Of a DNA stretch of 64,000 nt, positions 9,273 through 24,633 are shown in pieces (the first letter of the stretch is position 1; each line of letters begins with the position of its first letter). The stretch lies in sequence record LC592711.1, one strand, 5' to 3'. Both the position numbers and the translations under genes were made by a program. Under the pieces are notes generated by a model. That model searched no databases and was not told the DNA's origin. It saw nothing but the letters and a program-made list of their open reading frames with translations.

Positions 9273-10394
9273 ATGAGCGACGTCAACATCACTCCCGTCT
9301 CACATGTTTTCGACGAGACCGGCACCCTTGCCGAGAACTACGTCGAGAACGAACAACGAGATCTGGCACAGCGCAATATCCGCGCTGCTTGCACGCGATA
9401 CGGTGCTTTCTTCATCGAATCGTTCAAGATCCGGGACGCCAATGGCAATCCGCTTGCGGCGAACCAATACCAGTTTGGCCTGTTCGCAGAAGAACTGTCC
9501 GAAAAGACTGGTAAGGAAATCGCGGGTGCGGTGATCATCACCGACCCGGCAGTGATTTCGCCCGTCTTCATGGACTACCAGTGTGTTGGTGGTCCGTGGG
9601 GCGCAACCAACGAGCAGATCATCGATCTGTTCACGGCGTTGATGTCTGACGACCGTCCTGTGACGTGGCCGAACATTCTGGGTAAACCGGATGGCTTCAA
9701 GCCTGCTCACCACTTCCAGGACATCGGTGACCTCTTCGGTGCCGAGTACTTCGTCAATGCGCTGGAGCGTCTGACCAACGCGTACCTCATGGGCGACAAT
9801 GCGTCGCACGATGAGATTCTGCGTAACATCGATCAGTTGCGTCAGGACATGAATCAGGGCTTGACTGACCTGAGCAATGCTCTGAAGGCATACGCGGATG
9901 CAGGTGATGCACGCGTTCAGGCTAACCTGGATAACGAAGCACAGATCCGCGCTCAAGCTGATACGACGCTCCAGGGCAACATCAATACGGAAGCGACGAC
10001 TCGCGGCAATGCCGACACGACTCTGCAGAACAACATCAACGCCGCGATCACGCATGCGGATAACGGCGATGCTGCACTTCAGCAGAACATCAACTCGGAA
10101 GCCACGGCCCGTCAGAACGCCGACACGGCACTCAATACGAGTATCAATTCGGTGAACACGGCTCTCGCCACTCACGTGGCCGCAAAGGGCAACGTGCACA
10201 GCCTGACACCTGCGCAGCTGGGCGTCTATACGACTGCTCAGGTGGACGCACTGATTGCTCAGATCAACAACCAGCTGACCGGCTATGTCAAGAAGAATGC
10301 CGGCGAAGACACCTCGCTTACCGTGAGCGGTGGCGTGTTGTATGGCTGGGTGGGTGGTAACTGGCGTGCAGTTTGGCCGCCCCAGTGGCAATAA
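9273..10394 (+). CDS. Tail fibre protein (paralogous N-terminus to 7186..9261)
   Basis: HVFDETG...ENYVENE N-terminus; coiled-coil EAxxRxxADxxLQxNI repeats; GNVHSLTPAQLG motif; ends GWVGGNWRAVWP. Confidence 0.72.
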   Translation: MSDVNITPVSHVFDETGTLAENYVENEQRDLAQRNIRAACTRYGAFFIESFKIRDANGNPLAANQYQFGLFAEELSEKTGKEIAGAVIITDPAVISPVFMDYQCVGGPWGATNEQIIDLFTALMSDDRPVTWPNILGKPDGFKPAHHFQDIGDLFGAEYFVNALERLTNAYLMGDNASHDEILRNIDQLRQDMNQGLTDLSNALKAYADAGDARVQANLDNEAQIRAQADTTLQGNINTEATTRGNADTTLQNNINAAITHADNGDAALQQNINSEATARQNADTALNTSINSVNTALATHVAAKGNVHSLTPAQLGVYTTAQVDALIAQINNQLTGYVKKNAGEDTSLTVSGGVLYGWVGGNWRAVWPPQWQ

Positions 10395-10435: not shown

Positions 10436-11359
10436 ATGGAGTGGGATAAAATGTTGATTGTCGATAAAGAAGTTGATCTCAGCTTGTGGGATGCAGCCGG
10501 GTTTTTCCGGCTGCTTTCTTGCTTGGAAGAAAATGAAATCGATGAATACAAGCAGTACAATGATTCATTGATAGGCATGCGTTATCTCAATATAATGCCA
10601 ACACAGCAAAACGACATCAGTGGCGTTTATGTGATGTATTTCAAATCAAACAGTAAGTTCTATATCGGAAGTAGTCGAAAATGTGCCGGTCGCATCGCGG
10701 TCCATCACAACTACATGAAAGCCGGAAGACATCAAAACGTTAGAATCGTTCAAGCATATCGTGAAAATCATCAGTGTAAGCCAGAAGTGATTTTTATCGA
10801 TACGTATACTGAGGAACGAGCTCGTCATGTCGAACAGCGACTGATTGACCTCGTCTTTCTGGATCCGTACTGTCTGAATCAGCGTCAGATGGTCGAGGAA
10901 TATCGTCCTTCCACTGAATCGACTCGCGAGAAGCTTCAGTCATCTGCAAAGCGACAATGGCAGGATCCGAATTTCAAGAAAAAGATTAAAAAGATTTATT
11001 CTGATCCGAACCATCGTGAACGTAGAATCGCCAACGGCAAGAAACTCACGGAAGATCCGGAGTACATGAAGAAGCTCAGCGATGCCTCTAAGAAGCTCTG
11101 GGAAGATCCAGAATACGCTGAGAAGATCAAGAGGTCTGGTTCTGCGGTCTGGGACGACGAAGCCTTCAAAGAGCGTCATAAGGCAGCCATGAAGGCTAAG
11201 TGGGCCGATCCTGAATACAAAGCTCGCGTGGTTGGTAAACGTGCTGAGGCTCAACGTAAACCCGTTACGATTAATGGAGTCCAGTATTCTCATGCAAAAG
11301 CAGCTGCACAAGCGCTAGGTATGAGCGAGACTTCGGTTCGCCGCAAATGCGACAAATAA
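10436..11359 (+). mobile_element. Free-standing GIY-YIG homing endonuclease (Seg-like)
   Basis: SGVYVMYF...FYIGSS...R catalytic motif, conserved E and N, about six W/L-x-DP(E/N)(Y/F) helical repeats, C-terminal HTH (VTINGVQYSHAKAAAQALGMS). Confidence 0.82.
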
Positions 11360-11405
11360 AAAGCAATAAGCCGTCGGGATATAGTGACTCTATAGGGGAT
11401 TGATC

Positions 11406-11894
11406 ATGACCATAGTCTTGAGACATATCTCGTTGGATGATCTACATCTCGACGAGCTGCTGTTTTCGCCGTATCCGTACGAACAACAGATGGTGAAGTA
11501 CATCACTGCTGACGGACGACAACTTACGCCGAATGATGCTTCTGAAGTTGGTACCATGAAGCAGTTCGGTACGATCAAAATCGAAGGCATGGAAAAGATC
11601 TCGAAGAAGGTCTTTGATGCTATCAAGAAGTTCTCGCATGATGGTCCTTTGACCTGTCATGTCTTTATCGCAGCTGAAGGTGCCCCCAGTTTTCCGGATC
11701 ACACCGATCCGGACGACGTCATGCTTTATGTCGTCGATGGAATAAAAACAGTGATCATCGATGGTACGGTCCATGTTCTGAACGCCGGACAGTCCATCTA
11801 TATTCCTGCTGGTGTGGTACACCGTGCAATCAACACTTCCTCCTCAGTGATGATGAGCATCGGCTTTGAATCTTACATTGTGGAGAAACTTTAA
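11406..11894 (+). CDS. JmjC/cupin-type 2OG-Fe(II) oxygenase
   Basis: CHVFIA...SFPDHTDPDDVMLYVVDGIKT...LNAGQSIYIPAGVVHRA gives an HxD...H facial triad, as in ribosomal oxygenase-like cupins; in-frame TTG at 11400, ATG at 11406. Confidence 0.75.
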   Translation: MTIVLRHISLDDLHLDELLFSPYPYEQQMVKYITADGRQLTPNDASEVGTMKQFGTIKIEGMEKISKKVFDAIKKFSHDGPLTCHVFIAAEGAPSFPDHTDPDDVMLYVVDGIKTVIIDGTVHVLNAGQSIYIPAGVVHRAINTSSSVMMSIGFESYIVEKL

Positions 11895-11896
11895 AA

Positions 11897-12961
11897 ATGC
11901 ATCGCACGGTATATATCAAAACAACGGAAGCGTGCAATCTGAACTGCAAGCATTGCTTTACCGGGGGCAGTCAACCGAAGCGTGAATTCCTCGACGTGGA
12001 AAGAACGATCGACTGGGTTCGACGTCTGTTTGAACACTTGAGTTTCGAGGACCACACGCATTTCGAACTCCACGGTGGTGAGCCGTTCCTCCTGCCCGTC
12101 AAGCAGTTGAAGGAACTGACTAAAGGTATTCGTACCTGGGGTCCGGTCAAGCACTCGATTGGTGCGACCACGAATCTGGTTTACAAGTTGACGGATGAAC
12201 TCCTCTGGTTCATCCGCAACGATCTGGAAAGCATCGGCACGTCCTGGGATCCGGATATCCGATTCAAGAACGACAAGCAGTACCAGCTGTGGTGGGAGAA
12301 CATGAAGACCATCACGAATCACTGTGATGTCACACTGAACGTGAGTGTCTCCCGCAAGCTGACGGAAATGAACGTCAGCGATCTGCTGATGTATCTGCGT
12401 GACACCGGTGCTTCCAAGGTGCAATTCGAACGCATCACCCAGAACGGGAACGCGAAGAAGAATCTGGCTCTTTTCCCCACGAATGCAGAAATCAACGACT
12501 GGTATCTGCGCCTGCACAACGCGTCCGAGAAGTTGAATGCTCGCGACTGGTTTTACAACGCAGCACTGGAAGACGTGTATGCAAAATTCGAAAATGGCAA
12601 TGCTTGCTCTGGCACGTTCTGTCGGAATTGCGAAGAGACCATCTTTACGCTCAACGCGGACGGCAGCATTGGGGGTTGCGCCAATTCGGCGCCAGAGGAA
12701 TCCTTTGGACACATCGACATGGACATCGGAGAACTCTTCGACGCCACTGGACGAATCGATAACATTGTTAAAGAGCGCATGCGCAACGAGCAGTGTTACG
12801 TTTGCCCTGTGGCCGCTCATTGCGGTGGTGATTGCCACCGACTGGCTTGGGAAGGCGATGTGTGTGCAGCACCCCGGCAGCTGATGAAGAAGCTCGCTGG
12901 TTTGCCGCTCGACGCACCCGAAGTCCAACCGAAACGTATCATTCCCATCATGGTGGTTTAA
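11897..12961 (+). CDS. Radical SAM/SPASM protein 1 (peptide-maturase type)
   Basis: CNLNCKHC (CxxxCxxC), HGGEPFL, SPASM cysteines CSGTFCRNC...GGC...CYVCPVAAHCGGDC...C. Confidence 0.9.
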   Translation: MHRTVYIKTTEACNLNCKHCFTGGSQPKREFLDVERTIDWVRRLFEHLSFEDHTHFELHGGEPFLLPVKQLKELTKGIRTWGPVKHSIGATTNLVYKLTDELLWFIRNDLESIGTSWDPDIRFKNDKQYQLWWENMKTITNHCDVTLNVSVSRKLTEMNVSDLLMYLRDTGASKVQFERITQNGNAKKNLALFPTNAEINDWYLRLHNASEKLNARDWFYNAALEDVYAKFENGNACSGTFCRNCEETIFTLNADGSIGGCANSAPEESFGHIDMDIGELFDATGRIDNIVKERMRNEQCYVCPVAAHCGGDCHRLAWEGDVCAAPRQLMKKLAGLPLDAPEVQPKRIIPIMVV

Positions 12962-12967
12962 GGAAAT

Positions 12968-13528
12968 ATGAGTACATATCGCACAGACGTCGACGCCGTA
13001 GCCCAGGCGTACGTACGTAACCAGGTGAACGGGAGTATCAATCCGTTCCGCTCGGACTGGGCACCGGGCTACACGAACACCGGCTTGCTGGGCTGGATCT
13101 CGCAAGATCCCCCTGCATCGCATCCGTCGTCCAATGGCGAACTCAGCACTGCCGGTAACACGATGGTGACCAACCAGGTTCGCAATGCGATGATTGACCT
13201 GGGCAACTACTACGGCTGGATCGCCAAGGGCCACTACGGTCTGCAGTCGACCAACCAGAGCGGCGCGAACTACTTGCAATACGAGGGCTACGGCTACTTC
13301 GTGTTCAACGGTGCAGCGCCTGGTGCTCAGGATCATGCGAACCGCGTGGCGGCAGATCTGAACACCGCTGGGACGATGAACGGCACGATTCGTTATCAGT
13401 CGCTCATCGACTTCTACAACTTCGCGTGGAGCATCATCTGGAATCGTAAGGACGACCTGCAAGTCGAACTCACGGTTTGCCATTCGTCGTGCCACACTTC
13501 GTGCCACGGCTCCCGCGGTCGTCGTTAA
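12968..13528 (+). CDS. Putative radical SAM substrate protein with C-terminal (CHxS)3-RGRR motif
   Basis: Ends VCHSSCHTSCHGSRGRR; all three Cys of the protein lie in this tail; strong RBS (aagga), 6 nt after the rSAM1 stop. Confidence 0.65.
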   Translation: MSTYRTDVDAVAQAYVRNQVNGSINPFRSDWAPGYTNTGLLGWISQDPPASHPSSNGELSTAGNTMVTNQVRNAMIDLGNYYGWIAKGHYGLQSTNQSGANYLQYEGYGYFVFNGAAPGAQDHANRVAADLNTAGTMNGTIRYQSLIDFYNFAWSIIWNRKDDLQVELTVCHSSCHTSCHGSRGRR

Positions 13529-13538
13529 GGAGAAGAAC

Positions 13539-14606
13539 ATGATCAATCTGTTCGATCGTGTCTATCTGCGACACGACAACGTTCTCGCTCGTGGTGAAGG
13601 TCAGAAGAAGCTGATCATCAGCCCGAAAGTCAAAGAGATCGCGTACGTCACTGATGCACTTCAGCAACAACAAGCTGGCATCCTCGGCACGTACGAGACG
13701 CTCGCCGACGCCATCCATTACGCTGGCGACATCAACGCGTTCTGGGGACAGCTGCGCACCAAGGCGAAGATCGTCATCATCGCTGACCGTGTGACCGTCG
13801 CTACGCTGCTCGTACAGTACTGGAAGGCAATCTTCCAGAGCCCGTCGAAAGAAAGCCTGTATCTGCTGTACGAGATCATGGTGAACAACGAGAACCTGCA
13901 TTCGCACCGTCCGACGGAAAAGCGCACGCATCTGTTCTCGCCCAATTCGACGCCGGGCGATGTCGAAAAGCTCACGGAAGAAGAGTTCCAGGAAATCTTC
14001 GACAAGAACGAAGCGGCTCTGATCGACTTCTCGTCGGATGCTCAGCTGTCGAGCATTCCGTTTGAATATCTGCTGATGTCATATCTGGCAGATCCGAAGG
14101 ACGAGTTGGTGAAGCGAGTGCTCTTCCAGAAGCTCGACGGCATCATGCGCAGCAACATCGTCGCGAAGCTGATCGGCGGTCGTGAAGAACTCATGTTCGA
14201 ATCGCACAACTACTATCTGCTCACTTCGGATGGGCCGGAAGAACTGATCGTCGACCCGATCGGTTACATGAAGAAGAGCGGTCATCTGGCATGGGTCATG
14301 GACGAAGCATTCGTCTACGGCAACGAAGACGAGATCCTCGCGAAGTATTCACTGGATCAGATCAAGTTCTTCTTCGAACAGATCAAGCGTCTGGTGCTGG
14401 AAGATGAATCGATCTTCGTGGCGATCGACTGCGTGAAGAAGAAACAATTCGCGCGCCTGATCGAATACGACATCGACGATCATCAGGGTAACTTCTTCGG
14501 CACGGGTGCGTTCGTGAACAAGATCAACGGTCTGTTGGTTTCGTTCGCGTATCAACTCAAGCGCATGGGGAACGTGAATCTCCTGAAGCAGTACGAACTG
14601 AAGTAA
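13539..14606 (+). CDS. Hypothetical protein of the radical SAM island
   Basis: 355 aa, RBS aggag, tightly coupled to the substrate-like gene; no motif recognised. Confidence 0.7.
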   Translation: MINLFDRVYLRHDNVLARGEGQKKLIISPKVKEIAYVTDALQQQQAGILGTYETLADAIHYAGDINAFWGQLRTKAKIVIIADRVTVATLLVQYWKAIFQSPSKESLYLLYEIMVNNENLHSHRPTEKRTHLFSPNSTPGDVEKLTEEEFQEIFDKNEAALIDFSSDAQLSSIPFEYLLMSYLADPKDELVKRVLFQKLDGIMRSNIVAKLIGGREELMFESHNYYLLTSDGPEELIVDPIGYMKKSGHLAWVMDEAFVYGNEDEILAKYSLDQIKFFFEQIKRLVLEDESIFVAIDCVKKKQFARLIEYDIDDHQGNFFGTGAFVNKINGLLVSFAYQLKRMGNVNLLKQYELK

Positions 14607-14612
14607 TTCGAA

Positions 14613-14653
14613 TGCTGCCTGACTCCTTCGGGAGTCGGGTAGTATCTTTTTTT
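14613..14653 (+). terminator. Rho-independent terminator
   Basis: tgctgcctgactcc-ttcg-ggagtcgggtagta stem followed by a T-run. Confidence 0.75.
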
Positions 14654-14700
14654 CTATTGATAGGTATTCTTTTTTGACCTATCCCACTGAGGAATACGAA

Positions 14701-16068
14701 ATGAGCGAAGATAAGAAAACCGATGTCATTCTCGAACGTCCGGCCGATGGCACTGACGCTGTACGCGACGATGCATTCGTGAAGCCGTCGAAGATCGCGG
14801 ACGCAATGTTCAAAGGCACTGAAGGTGTTCGCATTGAACTCGACCGAGTAGCTGATGTGACTTACCATGGTCCGCTGGGATCGGAGAACATCGTCGATAA
14901 GGAAATTGATCGCAAGGTTCTGGGTGACGACCCGAAGCGGATCAACCATCAGCTGATGGAACAGCCCAAGCCGGTCGTCGAAGTACTGAGCGGTACGATC
15001 ACGCCTGAAGATCAGAAACTGGGTTATTCCTGGACGCTGAAGATGAAGGTCGGTGTGGACGAAGCTGGTAACAAGGAAGTCATCCACTCGGATTCGAAAT
15101 CGACGGACGGCCTGAAAGTCGTCAATGACGAACTGGTGTGGCCGAAAGCAGTCGAAGGCACGGAAATCAGCGAAAGCGGCAAAGTCGAAATGAATGTCGA
15201 ATTCGCCGGCGGCTGGGGTACAGAACTCCCGCCGCAAGAACAAACGCCTGAAGTCCAGACCGGCATTCCGGAAGACAAGCTGCGTGAAGTTACCGTGCCG
15301 TTCCCCGCCGACAAGATCCGTGAATACTTCCAGGACAAGTCGCTCTTCTTCATCGCGAACTACAGCGAATCGAAGCTGAAGGGCGGTGCTTTCCTGACGT
15401 ATCTGTCGAACATCAACATCCCGTCGGATGTGAAGTTCAATACGCCGATCGGCTACGACGAGTACGCTGAAGTCATGAAGGCGTACATGGAACAACCTGG
15501 CGTGATCAACTGCGCAGGTCTGCATGTGATGGCTGCTGAAATGCTGCTGTTCGCCAAGGGTCTGCCGTATGAGCGTTCGCCTTACGCTCTGCCGATCGAA
15601 GCTGCAATCGTCCAGCAGTTCATCGACAGCCACAAGGAAATGGTCGACAAGTGGTTGCACTTCATCGACTCGACGCAAGTGTTCGCTCTGCGTTCGATCA
15701 AGGCACTGAACGACTTCTACAATCCGGAGACTCGTTTCCCGGTCGTGGAAGATCGCAGCTACGTGGGCTGGAACATCGCCCAGCTGTTCCGTATCCCGGA
15801 ATTCATCGCCGTGTACTTCCAGATCGAAGGCGCGCAGTACAAGCTGTCGTACTTCAAGGACCAGTACGAAGAGTACATGTTCAAGAACGAGACGCTCGCC
15901 AAGTACTTCCAGTCGCAGAACAACTTCGCCGCGTTGTACTTCATGCACTATGCGTCGGGCCTGTTCCAGCCGGCGGACATCAATCACGGTCTGTTCCGTA
16001 TCGGCGTGTTCGATCCGGAAAGCGAATTCTTCGAGAAGACGCCGTATGACTTTAGCATTCAAGAGTGA
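14701..16068 (+). CDS. Hypothetical protein of the radical SAM island
   Basis: ATG 14701 after a gagga RBS, in the frame of ORF 14674..16068; acidic N-terminal third, aromatic-rich C-terminal domain; no motif recognised. Confidence 0.7.
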   Translation: MSEDKKTDVILERPADGTDAVRDDAFVKPSKIADAMFKGTEGVRIELDRVADVTYHGPLGSENIVDKEIDRKVLGDDPKRINHQLMEQPKPVVEVLSGTITPEDQKLGYSWTLKMKVGVDEAGNKEVIHSDSKSTDGLKVVNDELVWPKAVEGTEISESGKVEMNVEFAGGWGTELPPQEQTPEVQTGIPEDKLREVTVPFPADKIREYFQDKSLFFIANYSESKLKGGAFLTYLSNINIPSDVKFNTPIGYDEYAEVMKAYMEQPGVINCAGLHVMAAEMLLFAKGLPYERSPYALPIEAAIVQQFIDSHKEMVDKWLHFIDSTQVFALRSIKALNDFYNPETRFPVVEDRSYVGWNIAQLFRIPEFIAVYFQIEGAQYKLSYFKDQYEEYMFKNETLAKYFQSQNNFAALYFMHYASGLFQPADINHGLFRIGVFDPESEFFEKTPYDFSIQE

Positions 16069-16081
16069 TTCCAACTCTTCG

Positions 16082-17146
16082 ATGACGTTGAAGGACGCAT
16101 CCCAATACCACCTGAGCCTGAGCTTGGAATGGCTAAAGGGATGCCAGTTCAACTGTAAAGGGTGCCACGTCAATAAAAAGGTGGGGCTTCCCTTTACAGG
16201 CGACGATCTCGGTAATCTGAACCGGTGGCTTGATAGCATGCGGTGGAAAGGTAATTACTTGCCAACCATCGTGTTCTTGCAGCCCACTGACTTCCTGACT
16301 GCCGAGAATACCGCCGACATCCTGAAGAGTCCGTACACATACCCGACTCTGTCTGTGTTCAAACGTCTGTCGCTGCAATCGACGTTCCTGAACATGGACA
16401 ATGCCGTCGAGATCGCTTCGATCCTGAAGGCGCGGTTCTTTCACATGGAGTTGGAACTCAACTTCATCATCGAACCTGAGAAGGTAAACAACGAAAAGTA
16501 TCTCGACACGATCAAGGCTAACCGCGATCGTTTCATCGAGATGCTCGATTGGAAGAAGCACGTCGCATCCTTCGCCATCATGAACGTCTATGAGTACGAT
16601 CGGGTGAAGAAGAACGACGTGAAGAAGATCCTGGCTGATTACCAGGCACTTCATGACAAGATCGGGGAGAAGTTTGGTTCCACGATCGACTTCAACTTCT
16701 CCATGACTCGCAATCCGTGGTGGAGTAACGAAGACGTAGCCGATGCTGTACGTGGCGTCAGTCGAATCTTCGACGATGGAGTGGACAATGTTTTTAACCA
16801 GACGATCCGCTTCTCGTTTGGTAAGCTGGAAGACTCGTCCATCGAAAAGCATTACAACTGGCATCAAGGGCACTTGTATGTGTCGCCGATGATCTACGAG
16901 CGTATCGCATCGTTTCATCGGAAGCTTCAGATTCCACTCACGCTGTATTCCGTGTGGGAAACAGAAGACTTCGAGCGTCGGTTGTTGATCGATCAGTATC
17001 ACAACTCCGAAACCAAGACCGAGTGCAATTCGTGTCGATATCAAGCCTCTTGTATTGAGCGCAATGTCCTGACGTTTATGGACATGCACGAGATCAAGGA
17101 CTGCATCATCGCCCGCAAAGCTCTCGATGCCATTAACGTCATCTGA
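16082..17146 (+). CDS. Radical SAM protein 2 (divergent)
   Basis: CQFNCKGC motif near the N-terminus; C-terminal CNSCRYQASC...C cluster; ATG 16082 follows the upstream stop at 16068. Confidence 0.75.
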   Translation: MTLKDASQYHLSLSLEWLKGCQFNCKGCHVNKKVGLPFTGDDLGNLNRWLDSMRWKGNYLPTIVFLQPTDFLTAENTADILKSPYTYPTLSVFKRLSLQSTFLNMDNAVEIASILKARFFHMELELNFIIEPEKVNNEKYLDTIKANRDRFIEMLDWKKHVASFAIMNVYEYDRVKKNDVKKILADYQALHDKIGEKFGSTIDFNFSMTRNPWWSNEDVADAVRGVSRIFDDGVDNVFNQTIRFSFGKLEDSSIEKHYNWHQGHLYVSPMIYERIASFHRKLQIPLTLYSVWETEDFERRLLIDQYHNSETKTECNSCRYQASCIERNVLTFMDMHEIKDCIIARKALDAINVI

Positions 17147-17150
17147 GACG

Positions 17151-17180
17151 CATATGGAGTGGCCTAGGCCACTCCATATG
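17151..17180. repeat. Perfect 30-bp palindrome
   Basis: CATATGGAGTGGCCTAGGCCACTCCATATG is its own reverse complement. Confidence 0.9.
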
Positions 17181-17195
17181 TCCTGTGAGGAATGT

Positions 17196-18218
17196 ATGAA
17201 CAACGATATCCTGAATGAAATGCTGTCATCCAAAGTGCAAGACAGCACCGAGATCGAACACCACCTGTTCGAGTACTGCAACCTGAACTGCTCCTTCTGC
17301 GGACAGGATCATGACTCGAAAGTCGGTATGGAATCGATCATCGACAAAGCGCATAAGACCGTGGATTTCATCTTCCATTCGAAGAAGAAGAAACACACCA
17401 TCAACGTGATGGGTGGTGAGATCTTCAATGACAAGATCGAAACGAATGTTTTCCTGGACTACTACAAGTTCTACGAGATCATCGAAAAGGTCTGTCGCGA
17501 TCTCGGCGTGGAATTCCAGATCAACTGGGTCACCAATCTCATCTTCACGGAAAACCGTGAGATGGTGCAGTGGCTCATGAACAAGACGAAGGCGCATGCC
17601 AGGATCTCGACGTCGTACGACTTCGCTGGTCGTGGGCTGGACATCAATCGTTCACTGGTGTTCAAGCACAACCTGAATCTGTTCAAGGAGCATATCGGAG
17701 TCGTCGGTTTCGTTCTCACGAAGCCTGCTATCCGTAAACTCCTCAATAGCACGGACATGTTCTTCCAGACTGTCCTGTATCCGAACTTCCCGTTGTATTT
17801 CGACTGGTACGTACCGGAGAAGTCCTCGAACAAGATGATGCCATCTGAGCAAGAAATGCTCGATGCACTTCTCTTTGTCGCGGATAAGTATCCGAACATC
17901 GAGCCGGTTAAGTCCATGCTGGAGAACGAGCACAACAAAATGACGTGCTTCAGCCTGAACAAGACCACAATCCTGCCTGATGGCAAGGAAGTAACTTGTC
18001 GGTACCTCGAATACGACAAAGAAAAATTTAACAACGACATTGATTATTCGAGCAATGCCAACATCATCCAGGCTCACCTTGATAGAAACGAATGCTATTC
18101 GTGTAATTTTTACGACCGCTGTCAATTTCGGTGTTTCGTTCAAGCCGATTGGGCTGAACTCGAACGACTCCCCACCTGCTTCATCAAAACCTTTTTCGAG
18201 CGAACAGTCGGATCATGA
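17196..18218 (+). CDS. Radical SAM/SPASM protein 3
   Basis: CNLNCSFC, VMGGEIF, C-terminal CFS...ILPDG...TC...CYSCNFYDRCQFRC...C; ATG 17196 after gagg. Confidence 0.85.
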   Translation: MNNDILNEMLSSKVQDSTEIEHHLFEYCNLNCSFCGQDHDSKVGMESIIDKAHKTVDFIFHSKKKKHTINVMGGEIFNDKIETNVFLDYYKFYEIIEKVCRDLGVEFQINWVTNLIFTENREMVQWLMNKTKAHARISTSYDFAGRGLDINRSLVFKHNLNLFKEHIGVVGFVLTKPAIRKLLNSTDMFFQTVLYPNFPLYFDWYVPEKSSNKMMPSEQEMLDALLFVADKYPNIEPVKSMLENEHNKMTCFSLNKTTILPDGKEVTCRYLEYDKEKFNNDIDYSSNANIIQAHLDRNECYSCNFYDRCQFRCFVQADWAELERLPTCFIKTFFERTVGS

Positions 18219-18787
18219 AACTCATTCTCATCGCAGCTGAAGCAGCAAACAAGGTCATCGGTAACGACGGCAAAATGCCGTGGCATATCCCGGAAGACCT
18301 GTGGCACTTCAAGGAAGTGACGTCCGGCCAAGCTGTTATCATGGGTCGCAAGACCTGGGAATCGCTCGGCAGCAAGCCTCTTCCCAATCGCGCCAACGTA
18401 GTCGTATCGAAAACGCTCGGTCCTTTGGAAGGCGCCCATTCTGTTCGCAACTTCAGAACGGCTGTCAAGACGCTGATTGCGGCTGGTTATGATCGCGTTT
18501 ACGTTATTGGTGGCGAGTCGCTTTATCGTGCCGCTCTTCCGTGGGCGTCGAAGATCATCCTTACGAAGCTCTACAAGTCGTACAAGGGCGATACGCATTT
18601 CCCGGACATCGATCCTTTACAATGGACAGAATACGATAAAGTTGACGTACTCACTGAGGAAGGATACGGATATCTTCAGTTACGCCAAAATACTCACGAC
18701 ACACTTTCCCAGCCGTTCACGATTTACAAGTACATGAACGTCAACCAACCCGACGTCGCCAAATGGGTCGACCTCATCAAGGATTAA
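18215..18787 (+). CDS. folA: Dihydrofolate reductase
   Basis: IGNDGKMPWHIPEDLWHFK, VIMGRKTWESL, PLPNRANVVVS, VIGGESLY, GDTHFP. Confidence 0.9.
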   Translation: MKLILIAAEAANKVIGNDGKMPWHIPEDLWHFKEVTSGQAVIMGRKTWESLGSKPLPNRANVVVSKTLGPLEGAHSVRNFRTAVKTLIAAGYDRVYVIGGESLYRAALPWASKIILTKLYKSYKGDTHFPDIDPLQWTEYDKVDVLTEEGYGYLQLRQNTHDTLSQPFTIYKYMNVNQPDVAKWVDLIKD

Positions 18788-18789
18788 CA

Positions 18790-19428
18790 ATGGACATCAC
18801 ACTGGTCGCAGTCATGGGTGCCAATGGGGTCATCGGTTCCGGTAGCAACAAGCCGATGTTCGTCGCCCAACACGCCGCGTTTGTTAAGCAATACGCGCAG
18901 GGCAAACCGGTCATCATGGGTCGTAAGACTTACCAAGCTCTGGGTGGCGGTATCCCTGGCGCCGACAACTACGTCCTCACGCGCAACTTCGCTCTCAGTA
19001 TTGCTGCGTTCGACAATGTGACGACTGCACTGGCTCTGGACGGTGCTTTCATTTCTGCGTTCGAGCGGAAGATGGCGAATGAATTGGTGGTGCTCGGCGG
19101 CGCCGCGACGTTCCATGCGTTCTATCCGTGGGCGAACCGCATGCACATCACGCATATTCGCGAGAACATCGAAGGAGATCGTTTCTTCCCGAGCTATCCA
19201 GGATGGCGCCCCGGTCTCATCAACGATCGTTACGAACAAGGCGAAACGCAGTTCGAACGCATCGACTACCGGCGTGATGACTGGCACTACTATCCGAACG
19301 AGACCCCGGAAGACGTGAATACGCTTATCATCCTGAATGCTATTCGCACGCAACGCGGTTATCGTCCTCTGAAGACGGAACAACATGAACCACCCATCGC
19401 TGATCATCAAGCCGACGGAAGCGTGTAA
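18790..19428 (+). CDS. DHFR-fold protein, divergent (PW..D substrate motif lost)
   Basis: VIMGRKTYQAL, VLGGAATF, EGDRFFP retained; the PWxLPxD region reads PMFVAQH. Confidence 0.75.
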   Translation: MDITLVAVMGANGVIGSGSNKPMFVAQHAAFVKQYAQGKPVIMGRKTYQALGGGIPGADNYVLTRNFALSIAAFDNVTTALALDGAFISAFERKMANELVVLGGAATFHAFYPWANRMHITHIRENIEGDRFFPSYPGWRPGLINDRYEQGETQFERIDYRRDDWHYYPNETPEDVNTLIILNAIRTQRGYRPLKTEQHEPPIADHQADGSV

Positions 19429-20461
19429 CTTCAAGTGCACTTTCTGTTCGTCCACCGATATCCAGGGCGAATCTCCTAACCTGGATATCGAGTACATCAA
19501 GCTTTACCTGGAGCGCTTTCCCAAGACTCCGACCATCATTGTCAATGGTGGTGATCCACTGATGATGAAGCCTGAGTACTATTGGGCGATCTTGAAGATC
19601 ATCGAGGATATGGGGCTGACCACCACACTCTCGTTTACAAGCAATCTGTGGGCTTTCTACAAGAAGCCTGAGATGTGGGTGGACTTGTTCCGCCATCCGC
19701 TTGTAGGCGTGTCTACGAGCTTCCAATACGGCAATGCGCGGCTTAAGGGCGACCTCACTCCGTTTACCGAGGAAGAGTTCTGGAAAATCTCGGATCTGTT
19801 CCTGGAGAAGGTCGGTTATCGTCCATCTTTTATTGCTGTCATTACAAAAGAAAATGAGGATAGCAGTATCAAGACTGTCGAGCTTGCTAAACAGATGGGT
19901 GTTGTCTGTAAGCTCAACTATGCAATGGCCTCCGGACCCAAGACAACGTTCAAGGGAATCACGATCGGTAACGCCGATTCCACGTACGTCCTTGCGGATA
20001 TCTACGAAAAGTATATCGAGATCGCCGAAGCGGGTCTCGCGCCGTGGGAACATAACACGACGGTCATGATGAAACGGCTTCAGAGAACAGGTGCTCAGAT
20101 CTGTCCTCAGGCTCGTGAATGTGACACGGGCATTCGTGCATTGCAGCCAGGTGGCAAGTATTACAGCTGCGGTGCATTCGGAGACGACGGATTATATCCT
20201 ATCGACTTCACCAATGAGATGGCAGGTGCCTTCGAGCGCCCGTTGTCTTATCAGCCCGAGCTTCAATCGCTCAAAGAAAGCTGCTACGCATGTCCTATTT
20301 TTGACATCTGCAATGGTTGCCGTAAGACCATTCATGATCTCAAACGTCTTGACCTGGTGGAGACCCACTGCTCCAAGATGAAGACGCTCGCCGCTAAGAT
20401 TATCAAGATCAACAGGCTGGAAGGACAACTGGTCCCCACGCCTTACGTCAAGGAATCGTAA
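19385..20461 (+). CDS. Radical SAM/SPASM protein 4
   Basis: KPTEACNFKCTFC, NGGDPL, CPQARECD...PGGKYYSC...CYACPIFDICNGC...HC. Confidence 0.9.
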   Translation: MNHPSLIIKPTEACNFKCTFCSSTDIQGESPNLDIEYIKLYLERFPKTPTIIVNGGDPLMMKPEYYWAILKIIEDMGLTTTLSFTSNLWAFYKKPEMWVDLFRHPLVGVSTSFQYGNARLKGDLTPFTEEEFWKISDLFLEKVGYRPSFIAVITKENEDSSIKTVELAKQMGVVCKLNYAMASGPKTTFKGITIGNADSTYVLADIYEKYIEIAEAGLAPWEHNTTVMMKRLQRTGAQICPQARECDTGIRALQPGGKYYSCGAFGDDGLYPIDFTNEMAGAFERPLSYQPELQSLKESCYACPIFDICNGCRKTIHDLKRLDLVETHCSKMKTLAAKIIKINRLEGQLVPTPYVKES

Positions 20462-21007
20462 ATGGAACTGCTTCAACCTTGGAAGACGAGCATCGGTAAA
20501 ATGTCTGTGCTGGATTTCGTGGACATTGACTCGATGCTCAATGAAGTCATGCAACACCCGAAGGTCATGGAGAACCCGGTTAACGGGTCGCTTCGGGTGA
20601 AGTATGAAGAATTCCCGATCTGTTCGGATGTGCTGGAACACAAGCTCAAGCCGGAAGTCGAGAAGTACATCGAGATGATCGGTGGACGCGCTCCTCGCAG
20701 CCTCGCCTGGAGTAGCTGGTTTCACATCTGCATGCATGGTAACGGATTGATTCCGCACTACCATGACGAGGCACTGAATTCCGTTCTGTATTTTACAACG
20801 TCGAAGGCTAATCTAGTGCTACGCGACCCTCTGTCTTCCCAAGCAAGACAGTGGCCGCAGGACATGCGCAAGAAGATGCACGCCGACCAACAGTTTCACC
20901 CAGTCAAAGGCGACTTCCTGATGTTCCCGGGATACGTCGACCATTACGTTATGGCAGATGAACCGGACTTCCGGATCTCCATGGCAACTGACTGGATCTT
21001 TAGATAA
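20462..21007 (+). CDS. 2OG-Fe(II) oxygenase (2OG-FeII_Oxy_5-like)
   Basis: PHYHD...SVLY...LVLRDP...PVKGDFLMFPGYVDHYV...RISMA. Confidence 0.8.
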   Translation: MELLQPWKTSIGKMSVLDFVDIDSMLNEVMQHPKVMENPVNGSLRVKYEEFPICSDVLEHKLKPEVEKYIEMIGGRAPRSLAWSSWFHICMHGNGLIPHYHDEALNSVLYFTTSKANLVLRDPLSSQARQWPQDMRKKMHADQQFHPVKGDFLMFPGYVDHYVMADEPDFRISMATDWIFR

Positions 21008-21015
21008 GGTAAGTC

Positions 21016-21960
21016 ATGCTGGCTAACGAATCCGGGATTATCAACGTCTCGTTGAACCCAACGTACTACTGTAACTTCCGTTGCGACTTCTGTTACCTCA
21101 CGAAGAAGCAGCTGAACACTCAGGACTACTTGCCTGTGTCGGGTATCCGTAAGAAGCTTCAGGAGATCCTGGATTCGGGACACCAGATCGGACATGTGGA
21201 TTTCTACGGTGGTGAGGTAATGCTCCTGCCGATTCCTTATCTGCAGGAAGTGGAAAGTCTCCTCTTCGACGAGTTTCAGGTCGAAGATGTAGAGATCATT
21301 ACCAACCTCTCAGCCTACAAAAAACCGATCGTTGAGGACACGCGATTTGGTCTTTCTGTGAGCTACGATTTCGAGCATCGAGCCCAGCACGAACACGTGT
21401 GGCAAAACATGCTAAAAGTCCCGAAACCCTTTACTGTATTGACTTTGGGGGTGGGGGGCATGCTTGAGAGTGACCCTGCTGAACTGGTCGAAAAGATCAA
21501 TTTGCTGGAGAACTGCAAGGCTTGGGAAATCAAGCCATACAGCAAGAACCAGGCGAATCAGCTGGACGTCACAGACAAGCAATTCGAAGAGTTCGTCAAG
21601 AAAATCATCGAGTACCCGAACAAGCAGTTCGAGTTCTTGAATGAGACGAAACTGAGGACGATTAAGTTCCGTGACTACAACGCGTTCTCCGACAACCACG
21701 TCTACATCACGCCCAAGGGTAACTTCGGCGTGTTGGAGTTCGACGAGAACGATCGTGAGTTCTTCCTCGAACTGAAGACCATGGACCAATACGTCATGTG
21801 GACTCAGGGCGAGAAAGCTCGCGTCATGTCGAACGCAACCTGTGGTAGCTGCCAGTACATGGGTAAGTGCGCCTCTGAGCATCTGCGCGATGTCCAGTCC
21901 ATGGAGAACAGCTGCAACGGATTCTACAACCTGATTCAATGGTACGAGGAAAGACCATGA
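21016..21960 (+). CDS. Radical SAM protein 5 with SPASM/twitch-like C-terminus
   Basis: NPTYYCNFRCDFCY, YGGEV, HVYITPKG, CGSCQYMGKC...C. Confidence 0.87.
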   Translation: MLANESGIINVSLNPTYYCNFRCDFCYLTKKQLNTQDYLPVSGIRKKLQEILDSGHQIGHVDFYGGEVMLLPIPYLQEVESLLFDEFQVEDVEIITNLSAYKKPIVEDTRFGLSVSYDFEHRAQHEHVWQNMLKVPKPFTVLTLGVGGMLESDPAELVEKINLLENCKAWEIKPYSKNQANQLDVTDKQFEEFVKKIIEYPNKQFEFLNETKLRTIKFRDYNAFSDNHVYITPKGNFGVLEFDENDREFFLELKTMDQYVMWTQGEKARVMSNATCGSCQYMGKCASEHLRDVQSMENSCNGFYNLIQWYEERP

Positions 21961-22514
21961 CTGTAAGTCGCATGTGGGAGACTCCCATTGGCGAACGTAA
22001 TCTGGAGCCGAAGGTTACGTTCTACAAATTGCTGGATGAGGTAATGAACCATCCAGCAATTATGCAAGACATCAAAGTCGGCTCGCTTCGTATCTCCGAT
22101 CGAAAAGACGAATTCCCTGAGTGCACGCGTTTCATCGAGCACCATCTCATGGACGAAATGAAGGGATACGTCTATCAGGAATTCGGCGCTCGCGTCAAAG
22201 ACGTGAAGTGGTCGGCCTGGATTCATACGTGTTTCGGTGGTACAGGGCTCGTGCCGCATTACCACATGGGGCCTGAGCATTTCGCCTCGATTTTGTATTT
22301 GACTGACTCGAAAGCAAGTCTGATCATTCGAGATCCACGCGCCAACATGGTCCGTAATTTCCCTCAGGAGTTGAAGCATAACTTCGCGGACTATAAGGTC
22401 GATCCTCGGGTAGGTGACTTCGTGATTTTCCCTACTTACCTCGATCATTACGTGATGGCGGCTGAGCCCGACATGCGCGTCTCGATCGCTATCGATTGGT
22501 GTCTCGATGATTAA
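21957..22514 (+). CDS. 2OG-Fe(II) oxygenase (2OG-FeII_Oxy_5-like), paralog of 20462..21007
   Basis: PHYH...SILY...LIIRDP...PRVGDFVIFPTYLDHYV...RVSIA; ATG overlaps the rSAM5 stop (ATGA). Confidence 0.8.
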   Translation: MTVSRMWETPIGERNLEPKVTFYKLLDEVMNHPAIMQDIKVGSLRISDRKDEFPECTRFIEHHLMDEMKGYVYQEFGARVKDVKWSAWIHTCFGGTGLVPHYHMGPEHFASILYLTDSKASLIIRDPRANMVRNFPQELKHNFADYKVDPRVGDFVIFPTYLDHYVMAAEPDMRVSIAIDWCLDD

Positions 22515-23214
22515 ACCGATTACGCAAGCGGATATCGACGCTCTCAGGGCGTTGACTGAAGTACATCCCGTCTCCATCTCTGGACTCGAAATGCCGACTC
22601 TCCTCGATTACCTGCATGAAACGAAACCGTTCAGTGCAGATGACTTCCTGGGCGATTACCTGACGAAGGGGTTCTACTCCTTCAGCGCCAAAAAGCTGTT
22701 GTCGCCAATCGAAATCCAACGTTTCGAAGTCGTCAAGGTGAAACACGAAGACAACTGCTTCCACGCAGAAGGTCACGAGTTCCACAACGACTACATGCGC
22801 CTGTCGATCGAACAGCTGCAACGCGATCTTCGTCGTCTGTTGCATCAGGTGCCCGCCGAACTCACATTCGACTTCTACACGGACTCGGTCAATGACCACG
22901 TGCAGATGTGGCATAGCGATGCGCAGTACGCAATGCCTGAACAGAACGCAACCATCAACTGCTTCTTCGACAATACGTCGGAAATGCTGGGTGGTCGTTT
23001 TGACATGGCTCCGTACAGCCAGGACATCATCGGCACAAAGAAGCTCCCTGGCTACTTCACGTCGATCTATCCGCAAGCCTACGACGTGATCATTTTCAAC
23101 CAGAACCGGAACTTCCTGCATAAGGCAATTCCGTCGCAGATGCGTCGTCGCATGGTTTCGTTCGCAGCAACGTTCGCAGATATCAACCCACTTCTTCCGA
23201 ATTGGCAGCCATGA
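22507..23214 (+). CDS. 2OG-Fe(II) oxygenase (prolyl-hydroxylase-like fold)
   Basis: WHSD...INCFFD...GG...DVIIFNQ...FLHKA...RRMVSF gives HxD...H...R. Confidence 0.75.
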   Translation: MIKPITQADIDALRALTEVHPVSISGLEMPTLLDYLHETKPFSADDFLGDYLTKGFYSFSAKKLLSPIEIQRFEVVKVKHEDNCFHAEGHEFHNDYMRLSIEQLQRDLRRLLHQVPAELTFDFYTDSVNDHVQMWHSDAQYAMPEQNATINCFFDNTSEMLGGRFDMAPYSQDIIGTKKLPGYFTSIYPQAYDVIIFNQNRNFLHKAIPSQMRRRMVSFAATFADINPLLPNWQP

Positions 23215-23792
23215 TCGACACAGGCGAATTCATCAGCGAGTATCTGACCAAAGGTTTTTATCGTTTCGATGCATCGGAGGTTCTCTCCAGATTCGATATC
23301 AGGGCTTTTGGGGCGATCAAGAAAACGGACGCAACATTCGACACGGAAGATCCGCAAGAGCGCTACAAGGCTTATACGCCAGCGCAAACGGTACTCCTGC
23401 GTCAATTGTTGAAGGATATCTCTGAAGTCTACTTCAGCGACCTCAACCATGAGCTCCGTTTCAACGATATGTGGGCGTCGGCGAACCCGTACACCTACTC
23501 CTGGCACAACGACACACTGCGCTGCTGGCCTGGTTTCAACAGCAATGTGAACTGCTATTTCGATAGCATGGACGAAGGTATCGGCGGTGCGTTGCAGATG
23601 CACCCGATGGTGGAAGATTACGATTCGATCGCTGACGACAGCCCGCTGATTGCCGAAGTCTTCCCCCAGAAGTACGACATCATCGTCATCAACCAGAACA
23701 GCACGTTCCTGCACCGCGTCCGTCATACGGAAGAGAAGCGCACGATGCTCTCGTTCGCAGCAGGCTTCTTCGACTTCAACCCGGTCTTCTGA
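23211..23792 (+). CDS. 2OG-Fe(II) oxygenase, paralog of 22507..23214
   Basis: WHND...VNCYFD...GGAL...DIIVINQ...FLHRV...RTMLSF; ATGA overlap with the upstream stop. Confidence 0.75.
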   Translation: MIDTGEFISEYLTKGFYRFDASEVLSRFDIRAFGAIKKTDATFDTEDPQERYKAYTPAQTVLLRQLLKDISEVYFSDLNHELRFNDMWASANPYTYSWHNDTLRCWPGFNSNVNCYFDSMDEGIGGALQMHPMVEDYDSIADDSPLIAEVFPQKYDIIVINQNSTFLHRVRHTEEKRTMLSFAAGFFDFNPVF

Positions 23793-23794
23793 TC

Positions 23795-24214
23795 ATGCAA
23801 GAATGGAAGATGTGGAGAGAGGTCTACAACAACCTCGTTACGGATCATACCGATGCAAGACACAAACACGCCTTCGTCGTCAGTGACACAGTCGTCGACG
23901 ATGCAATCGAATACATCACGAATCGCAGTGAACTGGGCCGCTATCCAGGCAAAAGTCGAATCGTGGCTATCATCTATGCGTTCTGTGTTTCGGAAACTTA
24001 CGGAGAAGATTTTCTCCAGGTTCTCGACGATCCTGAACTCTTCCACAGCCCGGACGAATTCTTTGTCCCGTATTCGCAAGACAAAGACTCATACGACGCG
24101 ATCCTTGCCCGTCTCAAAGACATCCCTGGTTGGATTGAAGGGGGTTGGGCACCGAAGACGGTTGAGTACTTCCACCTGGAGTGTACTGAAGCGGGCGTAG
24201 CATCGATCAGCTGA
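23795..24214 (+). CDS. Hypothetical protein (last gene of the radical SAM island)
   Basis: 139 aa, starts 2 nt after the upstream stop; no motif recognised. Confidence 0.65.
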   Translation: MQEWKMWREVYNNLVTDHTDARHKHAFVVSDTVVDDAIEYITNRSELGRYPGKSRIVAIIYAFCVSETYGEDFLQVLDDPELFHSPDEFFVPYSQDKDSYDAILARLKDIPGWIEGGWAPKTVEYFHLECTEAGVASIS

Positions 24215-24246
24215 TCCTATAGTGTCCGACTAACTAGGGGATTATT

Positions 24247-24633
24247 GTGGGTTTCGATCTCACCAAACTCGGCAACGCTTTTCAGACTTTGACCACGTGG
24301 GTAACCGCTGGTCTGGCAAAGAAAGCAGACGCCACAGCAACATCCAATGCTCTGGCCACTAAGGCAGATGCTACTGCGACGACCAATGCACTGGCTGCCA
24401 AAGCCAATGCTACAGATCTCGCAACCACCAACACAAATCTGTCGAACCTCACGACTACCGTGGGAACGAAAGCTGATGCGACGGCAACGTCGAATGCATT
24501 GGCAACGAAAGCTGATGCAACCGCCACCACCAATGCCTTGGCAGGCAAGCAGAGTACGGTTCTGACAGGAACGGCTGCTCCTGCTGCTGGCGTGGGTAAT
24601 AACGGTGACGTGTTCCTCGTAACCGATACCTGA
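24247..24633 (+). CDS. Short Ala/Thr-rich fibre-like protein with KADATAT(S/T)NAL repeats
   Basis: GTG start after agggg; 11-residue repeats; C-terminal GTAAPAAGVGNNGDVF motif typical of phage fibres. Confidence 0.65.
   Translation: MGFDLTKLGNAFQTLTTWVTAGLAKKADATATSNALATKADATATTNALAAKANATDLATTNTNLSNLTTTVGTKADATATSNALATKADATATTNALAGKQSTVLTGTAAPAAGVGNNGDVFLVTDT

Follow-up and report, generated by a model that had tools for sequence, protein, structure and literature searches.

A jumbo-phage island of five radical-SAM enzymes as a candidate maturation system for a protein with an invariant Cys-His-x-Ser tail

The 64,000-nucleotide stretch of DNA analyzed here (the window) shows 100% identity to Burkholderia phage FLC6 (LC592711.1, genus Chiangmaivirus), a jumbo phage of 227 kb and kin of the Ralstonia phages RSL2 and RSF1. 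The window contains an island formed by FLC6 genes gp70–gp85. This island probably encodes a dedicated maturation system for one of its own products, gp72, in which five radical S-adenosylmethionine (radical-SAM) enzymes act on the C-terminal tail of gp72 and the product enters the phage particle. The segment modified, by the radical-SAM enzymes and several oxygenases, is most likely the invariant 16-residue end of the protein. An initial annotation of this DNA had proposed a virus-encoded, multi-enzyme maturation pathway for gp72; the distribution of the genes strongly supports that proposal, and the modification on the tail is the part that we infer. We found no paper that describes the tail motif or the system, and the genome papers (on FLC6, SURPRISE13 and RP12/RP31) give annotations of these genes and propose no function.

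The protein ends, as had been read from the sequence, in (CHxS)3RGRR, a stretch of 16 residues (CHSSCHTSCHGSRGRR). In 221 distinct proteins this motif lies always at the extreme C terminus and consists of three His-x-Ser units with a Cys before each; the three Cys, three His and three Arg are present in 100% of these proteins, the Gly between the Arg residues in 95% and the three Ser in 98%, 82% and 93%. Homologs of gp72 at 27–85% identity have identical last 16 residues, and another tail-bearing protein, P0013, has only the tail in common with gp72, the rest being unlike. All synonymous codon families are used in the tail, including both Ser and both Arg families, which places selection at the level of the peptide rather than the DNA. 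From these alignments, the tail appears to be the conserved object of the family, and the body diverges beyond recognition. A minority of variant tails keep the first Cys-His-x-Ser and the final His-x-Ser-Arg-Gly-Arg-Arg, with the middle replaced. Such a replacement (for example ...CHSSYVAPPHSSRGRR) leaves one Cys in the subfamily represented by loci L167, L168 and L170, and each of these loci carries four or five oxygenases of the gp83/84 type.

[quoted passage not shown] An AlphaFold2 (AF2) model of gp72 has a confident α/β body (predicted local distance difference test, pLDDT, 87; predicted template modeling score, pTM, 0.80) and a disordered tail (pLDDT <50). Since the tail lies at the extreme C terminus and is predicted to be disordered, it should be accessible. 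The fold has no match in the PDB and the sequence none among Pfam or NCBIfam families; against BFVD, the model matches only uncharacterized phage proteins of the same family, at 15–19% identity, including that of Agrobacterium phage Atu_ph07. A profile search of 1.84 billion representative proteins returned 398 clusters, nearly all of 170–230 amino acids, with the match reaching the last residue.

Scanning IMG/VR with the two halves of the tail gave 266 pattern matches, of which 95 were confirmed and 80 loci kept; among the loci gathered early, the motif closes 111 open reading frames (ORFs), which in some loci stand as an adjacent pair. We searched the FLC6 proteins against all ORFs of 83 tail-selected loci, many of which are cut by contig ends, so that the resulting counts are lower bounds. 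Homologs of gp76 are found in 72 of these loci, of gp79 in 59, gp81 in 57 and gp71 in 55, followed by gp74 (53), gp70 (51), gp85 (48), gp75 (39), gp82 (29), gp84 (20), gp73 (12) and gp83 (8). Type A loci comprise a cupin gene, gp71, one tail protein and gp74, then gp76, gp79, gp81 and gp85 together with oxygenases. Type B loci have two short tail proteins, about five gp75-like enzymes, gp76, gp79, gp81 and gp85, and are without cupin or gp71. On a divergent contig (L002) all that is kept is the cupin, two radical-SAM genes, the tail protein and a gp73-like gene, and here too the tail alone is common to its tail protein and gp72. As judged from these comparisons, the shared core consists of the tail protein, gp74, gp85 and five paralogous radical-SAM enzymes of the SPASM or twitch type.

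The association also appears when the search is run in reverse. A scan of IMG/VR with an alignment of gp79 yielded 339 confirmed loci, and a tail ORF is present in 71 of the best 79 new loci among them (68 strict, 3 slightly altered). Six of the other eight are short of upstream sequence, in one the tail gene falls a little beyond the retrieved stretch, and only one of the 79 is without a tail gene within 10 kb. Islands of this kind therefore do not as a rule lack the CHxS protein, in keeping with the initial annotation. The tail gene and the radical-SAM genes are near-obligatory partners in both directions, in a system that, by these scans, is carried by hundreds of uncultured phages. In isolate phages, gp79 is present in 15 of 50,697 records and gp85 in precisely these 15, and tail-motif genes occur in the same four isolate lineages as both: the FLC6/RSL2/RSF1 group, Pseudomonas phage pPa_SNUABM_DT01, Atu_ph07 and Sinorhizobium phage Phosso. 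The system is not particular to phiKZ-like phages, being carried as well by unrelated phages, both jumbo and T4-like, and by predatory bacteria. The Campylobacter phages CP220 and CPt10, which have 11–12 radical-SAM genes, were considered as members and set aside, as the phage collection gave no tail or gp79 match for them.

The bacterial version was reached through gp79. A family restricted to phages had been considered after a tail-pattern scan of genomes gave 105 matches, none of which could be confirmed, since the likeness is confined to 16 residues; a scan using the gp79 alignment then found the system in Bdellovibrionota. It gave at least 32 loci, at least 20 of them in Bdellovibrionota assemblies (Bacteriovoracaceae, Bdellovibrio, Pseudobdellovibrio, Halobacteriovoraceae and Oligoflexia). 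Two, L196 and L199 (Bacteriovoracaceae), lie on contigs of 2.45 and 2.84 Mb, with the complete core among housekeeping genes. The Bdellovibrionota loci have the same tail on proteins of similar size, along with gp74-like, gp85-like and gp71/75/76/79/81-like genes; gp85 homologs are found in most and gp73 homologs in several. Most are without the cupin (gp70 homologs occur only in L182, L183 and L185), nearly all without oxygenases, and none has a dihydrofolate reductase (DHFR) gene. Their flanks are cellular, with YebC (E = 7.5e-65) and a DinG-type helicase-exonuclease (E = 3e-36) and, by eye, LolA-, LspA- and CGFS-glutaredoxin-like genes. Among gp79 sequences the bacterial ones are mutual nearest neighbors, and this clustering fits long residence in the phylum and not contamination. 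Because the same core and the same tail stand in Bdellovibrionota chromosomes, the system is a self-contained module. The remaining genome matches, in Marinovum, Rhodobacteraceae, Rickettsiales and Dysosmobacter assemblies, share their layout with the phage loci and probably come from phage contigs that were binned with bacteria.

A CxxxCxxC motif is located near the N terminus of the ORFs starting at 11897, 16082, 17196, 19385 and 21016, as initially annotated, and its three Cys are invariant in alignments of 21–40 relatives. The Cys-rich C termini described at the outset are likewise conserved. Further invariant Cys number eight in gp71 (beyond C13/C17/C20), eight in gp79 (beyond C14/C18/C21) and five in gp76, the sequence of which adds a two-Cys pair upstream of those five. 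Four are invariant in gp75 (C315/C318/C324/C341, with C21/C25/C28, in 40 relatives) and four in gp81 (C276/C279/C285/C300, with C19/C23/C26). In GenBank the coding sequence (CDS) of gp75, labeled “hypothetical”, begins some 150 nt after the ATG at 16082 (16082–16238) and omits CxxxCxxC; the longer ORF is the better call because the motif is invariant in the 40 relatives. Pfam Radical_SAM (PF04055) scores above its gathering score in gp71 (30.6 bits), gp79 (46.3) and gp81 (29.9) and below it in gp76 (22.8 bits versus 29.5). It does not match gp75, which has the motif and profile-profile similarity to the other four. The hhalign probability is 93–98 for most pairs among gp71, gp76, gp79 and gp81 (96–98 for those that link gp76, apart from 72 for gp76–gp79) and 58–75 for gp75 with gp76 and gp81. 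Taken together, these profiles indicate that the five are mutual paralogs of the SPASM/twitch class.

The radical-SAM cores begin at residues 10–30. The SPASM domain model TIGR04085 is matched by gp71 at 28.8 bits (cut-off 27) and by gp79 below the cut-off, and the best solved relatives of the gp71 family profile are 8vpo, anSME (4k37), CteB (5wgg), ChlB and YydG. The leading NCBIfam matches of the radical-SAM enzymes are DynA, PapB, YhhB, anSME and HxsB/HxsC, and those of gp76 are HxsB, PapB and the viperin core, weak and, like the others, far below the family cut-offs. None of the five reaches the cut-off of any NCBIfam family or is assigned to a nucleotide-modifying family, and their weak affinity is to SPASM peptide and protein maturases, in line with the initial annotation. 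The enzymes gp71, gp75, gp76, gp79 and gp81 thus appear to represent new radical-SAM subfamilies. The gp79 enzyme is 54–89% identical to its homologs in other isolate phages, 49–62% to those of bacterial genome loci and 56–89% to those of viral contig loci, and remains 54–58% identical even between phages with barely alignable tail-protein bodies. Its family comprises at least 1373 clusters at E ≤ 1e-40, with the L196 homolog as query. PADLOC gave no full-length match to a defense model, with similarity to pVip models confined to the generic radical-SAM core in the first ∼100 residues. Intron or intein insertions, suspected in the gp79 genes of some environmental loci, were rejected: each gene gives a single uninterrupted match, and the long ranges are joins to the neighboring gp81-like paralog. 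In marine type A loci the core is joined by a B12-binding radical-SAM enzyme of 590 amino acids (L026, 13001–14770) and by extra 2-oxoglutarate (2OG) oxygenases.

The three proteins initially listed as unknown, gp73, gp74 and gp85, are without a match in Pfam or NCBIfam. The gp74-like gene usually lies directly downstream of the tail gene; an N-terminal extension of gp74 is specific to close relatives of FLC6, and its C-terminal domain gives a confident AF2 model (pLDDT 89, pTM 0.86) without a PDB match in fold or sequence or, in 21 members, a Pfam match. For gp85 there is no meaningful Pfam or PDB match, the matches to pentatricopeptide repeats (PPR) being repeat artifacts. We also considered gp73, gp74 or gp85 as degenerate radical-SAM proteins, and hhalign shows no relation. 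The RiPP recognition element (RRE) or PqqD domain for which hidden Markov model searches had been suggested was not found in the island proteins. No leader peptidase or exporter was detected in the island or the conserved core by Pfam and NCBIfam searches and locus comparison.

The family assignments of the remaining enzymes also agree with the initial reading. The JmjC-like cupin gp70 matches Cupin_2 (E = 1e-14) and JmjC_2 (E = 1e-7), and its H99-x-D101...H139 and K114 vary little or not at all among 40 relatives. Among the four proposed 2OG-Fe(II) oxygenases, gp80 and gp82 score above the 2OG-FeII_Oxy_5 (PF13759) threshold (34 bits versus 27, and 37.5 bits), with H107, H109, H170 and R180 conserved in gp82. 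The match of gp84 to 2OG-FeII_Oxy_3 is weak, and its H102-x-D104...H171...R180 is conserved in 95–100% of 20 relatives; its paralog gp83 belongs to the same PHROG (19592) and has the same H-x-D...H...R residues. As parts of the pathway the oxygenases hold up as accessories in phages and are mostly missing from the bacterial version; the cupin and the 2OG oxygenases are best described, on this distribution, as phage add-ons to the core. Both DHFR-fold proteins match DHFR_1 (PF00186), gp77 with 161 bits (E = 2e-47) and the divergent gp78, which has a C-terminal extension, with 94.8 bits (E = 6e-27). As members of the system they do not stand: homologs of gp77 are found in 5 of the 83 tail-selected loci and of gp78 in 2, all FLC6-like. 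The tandem pair (18215–19428) lies inside the island only in FLC6-like phages, and gp77 and gp78 appear to be passengers inserted in the lineage of FLC6.

A homolog of gp72 has been recovered from phage particles. Published mass spectrometry of Atu_ph07 virions lists gp170, of 31.89 kDa, with 8 unique peptides and 35% coverage (PMC6102473, Supplementary Table S5). The computed mass of the Atu_ph07 tail-motif protein is 31.89 kDa, and counting CDSs from the tail sheath (gp132) gives it the number 170, four neighbors agreeing by mass; it is therefore gp170. The protein was present in gel slices 1–9 and most abundant in slice 1, where proteins of 127–139 kDa run, while ∼30-kDa proteins normally peak in slice 8 (PMC6102473). 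The adjacent enzyme homologs (CDSs 164–169, 171, 172 and 149) are not in the virion list (PMC6102473). In Atu_ph07, then, the particle contains the tail protein, which runs far higher in the gel than its own mass would suggest, and the enzymes are left behind. The high gel position could reflect covalent linkage or an oligomer stable in sodium dodecyl sulfate (SDS). The suggestion that the CHxS protein might be a virion protein is borne out for this one member.

These observations are consistent with a model in which gp72 would combine a folded body with a flexible 16-residue tail, three Cys-His-x-Ser units followed by Arg-Gly-Arg-Arg, as predicted from its sequence and AF2 model. Five paralogous radical-SAM enzymes, three with SPASM-type Cys sets and two twitch-like with four Cys, would alter the tail covalently, most likely by intramolecular cross-links at Cys, His or Ser side chains. 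The partners gp85 and the C-terminal domain of gp74 may present or hold the substrate, and in phages the JmjC-like cupin and several 2OG oxygenases would provide oxygen-dependent tailoring. The matured tail would stay on the body and the protein would enter the particle, the enzymes staying behind, as the published proteomics suggest for the one homolog; the DHFR genes would be passengers. Maturation of a whole protein by radical-SAM enzymes encoded alongside it has precedents in HxsA/HxsBC (PMC13128918) and CrpA/CrpC (PMC13692751).

Several points weigh against this model. An SDS-stable oligomer, in place of covalent chemistry, could account for the gel position of gp170, and gp72 is absent from the FLC6 structural list transferred from RSF1. 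The gp79 enzyme matches the cofactor enzymes MoaA, NirJ and AhbD at an equally weak level. The single-Cys variant loci L167, L168 and L170 keep homologs of all five radical-SAM enzymes, so enzyme number does not follow Cys number. Neither Pfam nor NCBIfam gave an RRE or PqqD match in any island protein, and gp74 and gp85 have no recognizable fold; because their folds match nothing, either may hold a structurally cryptic RRE. We also tried to pair single enzymes with single tail residues by phylogenetic profiling and found no signal, the variant-tail loci keeping all five enzymes.

Three other explanations have to be weighed, each weakened by the virion data, the variant tails or the distribution of the DHFR genes. 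The C-terminal peptide could be modified and then cut off as a small molecule or cofactor, as for pyrroloquinoline quinone (PQQ) or mycofactocin, with the body as leader or carrier. The many redox enzymes would suit such a pathway, of which SPASM enzymes are typical, and an invariant segment with a drifting remainder is generally the pattern of cofactor precursors and not of antibiotic RiPPs. However, no peptidase was found in the core, and the body, 124–480 amino acids long, keeps a conserved fold at 15–19% identity and itself reaches the virion in Atu_ph07, all of which makes excision improbable.

We also consider it doubtful that the tail binds a metal or Fe-S cluster and that gp72 helps, by carrying clusters or donating electrons, enzymes that really act on some other substrate, for example a nucleotide, DNA or a small molecule. 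Metal could be bound by the three Cys-His pairs, the five Fe-S enzymes require cluster supply and reduction, and radical-SAM-rich marine T4-like viral genomes also carry Fe-S assembly genes (PMC5332604). Set against this, tails with a single Cys keep the full enzyme set, the tail is predicted to be disordered, and the homolog is packaged in virions without the enzymes. A metal-binding role would also leave the invariant Ser and Arg-Gly-Arg-Arg unexplained, and no other candidate substrate gene is conserved in the 83 tail-selected loci.

A nucleotide or DNA hypermodification or folate-linked pathway, with the CHxS protein incidental, is very improbable: two DHFR-fold genes lie within the island, thymidylate synthase and kinase genes lie elsewhere in the FLC6 genome, and radical-SAM enzymes are described in some phage thymidine hypermodification pathways (PMC8989533), but the rarity of the DHFRs and their absence from pPa_SNUABM_DT01, Atu_ph07, Phosso and the bacterial versions, the lack of any kinase, transferase or glycosylase-fold gene in the island by family searches, and the tail protein being the best-conserved partner largely refute it.

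The proposed maturation of gp72 on its tail has its closest functional analog, as far as sequence and published descriptions allow, in the HXS antiphage system, with CrpA/CrpC next. In HXS, HxsA is matured by the radical-SAM enzymes HxsB and HxsC, with HxsD, and a change of +8 Da maps to the last HxS repeat of HxsA (PMC13128918). In both systems several radical-SAM enzymes with small partners mature, or would mature, a whole protein with His-x-Ser repeats beside basic residues. The HXS modification lies in the last repeat, and the tail of the phage family is without variation in its first Cys-His-x-Ser and its last His-x-Ser-Arg-Gly-Arg-Arg. The best NCBIfam matches of gp76, gp79 and gp81, all weak, include HxsB and HxsC. 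However, the HxsB and HxsC equivalog cut-offs are not reached (best 24.8 bits versus 370, and 30.3 versus 267.9), and the HxsA and HxsD models give no match at E ≤ 1 to gp72, gp73, gp74, gp85 or two other tail proteins. In the phage family a Cys precedes each His and the motif lies at the extreme C terminus; there are five enzymes rather than two, with oxygenases added, and no peptidoglycan-binding domain was found in the phage system. HXS is encoded by the defending cell, whereas the present system is encoded by phages and predators, with a virion-associated product in one case, and it is not a member of HXS.

In Methanococcus voltae, the SPASM radical-SAM enzyme CrpC puts thioether cross-links on the Cys-rich protein CrpA (PMC13692751). 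There too a SPASM enzyme acts on a full-size, Cys-containing protein encoded alongside it and not on a short peptide; CrpC, however, is a single enzyme with an RRE and CrpA is Cys-rich throughout, whereas the FLC6 system has a short invariant tail and five enzymes. This comparison is one of descriptions and not of a demonstrated sequence relationship. The maturases anSME, CteB, PapB, DynA/DarE and YydG provide the nearest solved structures or NCBIfam models for the gp71 and gp79 families and have the three-cluster architecture in common with them; as in anSME, the radical-SAM core of these families starts from the N terminus without a leader-binding domain. The scores against anSME (42 bits versus 349) and the other SPASM maturases nevertheless fall far below the cut-offs, and substrate motif and partners differ. 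The PQQ, mycofactocin and QhpC/QhpD pathways share the invariant modified segment and the combination of SPASM enzymes with oxidative tailoring, and the QhpC product remains within a protein subunit. The QhpD model weakly matches two members of the gp76 family; no PqqD/RRE, peptidase or dehydrogenase partner was found here, and no model supports membership.

The coordinates of the island are collected in the table. Its 16 genes are all present on one strand, in the families initially assigned to them, and are mostly coupled as then described: they are tightly packed, with junctions from a 44-nt overlap to a 10-nt gap, apart from two wider ones between gp73 and gp74 (67 nt) and gp75 and gp76 (49 nt). 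The terminator-like hairpin in the first of these gaps could divide the island into two transcription units, gp70–73 and gp74–85.

Table. Features of the FLC6 island (positions in the window)
Feature	Position	Strand	Basis
gp70, small cupin/JmjC-like Fe(II) oxygenase, phage-side accessory	11406–11894	+	Cupin_2, JmjC_2
gp71, radical-SAM/SPASM enzyme, directly upstream of the tail protein	11897–12961	+	Radical_SAM, TIGR04085
gp72, tail-motif protein, proposed substrate	12968–13528	+	AF2 model, profile search
Tail of gp72 (16 codons, CHSSCHTSCHGSRGRR), proposed modification site	13478–13525	+	Column shares in 221 distinct proteins
gp73, unknown protein, extended version of the system	13539–14606	+	Homologs in viral and Bdellovibrionota loci
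Terminator-like hairpin, 15-pair stem and T-run, between gp73 and gp74	14612–14655	+	Consensus scan, sequence
gp74, unknown core partner	14674–16068	+	Conserved domain, residues 180–464 (15211–16065)
gp75, divergent radical-SAM enzyme, 4-Cys C-terminal motif	16082–17146	+	Motif, hhalign
gp76, radical-SAM/SPASM enzyme	17196–18218	+	Conserved Cys, co-occurrence
gp77, dihydrofolate reductase, putative passenger	18215–18787	+	DHFR_1
gp78, divergent DHFR-fold paralog, putative passenger	18763–19428	+	DHFR_1
gp79, radical-SAM/SPASM enzyme, most conserved of the system's enzymes	19385–20461	+	Radical_SAM, identities
gp80, 2OG-Fe(II) oxygenase, accessory	20462–21007	+	2OG-FeII_Oxy_5
gp81, radical-SAM enzyme, 4-Cys C-terminal motif, twitch-like	21016–21960	+	Radical_SAM
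gp82, 2OG-Fe(II) oxygenase, accessory	21939–22514	+	2OG-FeII_Oxy_5
gp83, divergent 2OG-oxygenase-like paralog of gp84	22507–23214	+	PHROG 19592, residues
gp84, divergent 2OG-Fe(II) oxygenase	23202–23792	+	Weak 2OG-FeII_Oxy_3, conserved residues
gp85, small unknown core partner	23795–24214	+	Co-occurrence

Directly upstream of the island is a gene for a GIY-YIG nuclease, gp69 (10436–11359), which may be a homing-type mobile gene at the island's edge. Proteins with short, fibre-like repeats are encoded on both flanks, by gp68 (9273–10394, annotated as a virion structural protein) and gp86 (24247–24633). The sequence TATAGTG occurs twice in the 64 kb (11380–11386 and 24218–24224), each copy ∼20 nt 5′ of a start codon, of gp70 and gp86, respectively, and each followed by AGGGGATT. 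With only two copies, TATAGTG is not above chance in number and was set aside as a promoter on that count; it may be a promoter element common to gp70 and gp86. Giant ORFs adjoin the system in several genomes (L067, 323–9745; L199, 869–7936; L203, 1–3572, cut), with 3140 amino acids in L067, 2355 amino acids in L199 and, in phage Phosso, a 13.7-kb gene annotated as a virion structural protein.

Phages and predatory Bdellovibrionota both must breach Gram-negative cells. It is conceivable, if rather unlikely, that the matured tail protein serves lytic phages and predatory Bdellovibrionota alike as an attack-stage factor that arrives with the virion or the invading cell, with its cross-linked basic His-x-Ser tail acting at the envelope or a DNA-entry step. 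Such a factor would be the mirror image of the HXS effector, in which matured HxS repeats block DNA entry, and possibly a counter to HXS. Demonstrations that radical-SAM enzymes mature whole proteins are very recent, those of HXS and CrpA/CrpC both dating from 2026. If the maturation of gp72 is as proposed, the present system would be a third and much larger family of this kind, with at least 1373 clusters for gp79 alone, the first from viruses and the first tied to a virion protein. It would give a definite, testable role to the many radical-SAM genes that annotators of jumbo phages and of marine T4-like phages have found puzzling. It also brings three new protein families, the tail-motif protein, the gp74 C-terminal domain and gp85, in a module unexpectedly common to phages and predatory bacteria, the invariant 16-residue tail of which is easy to search for and well suited to mass spectrometry.

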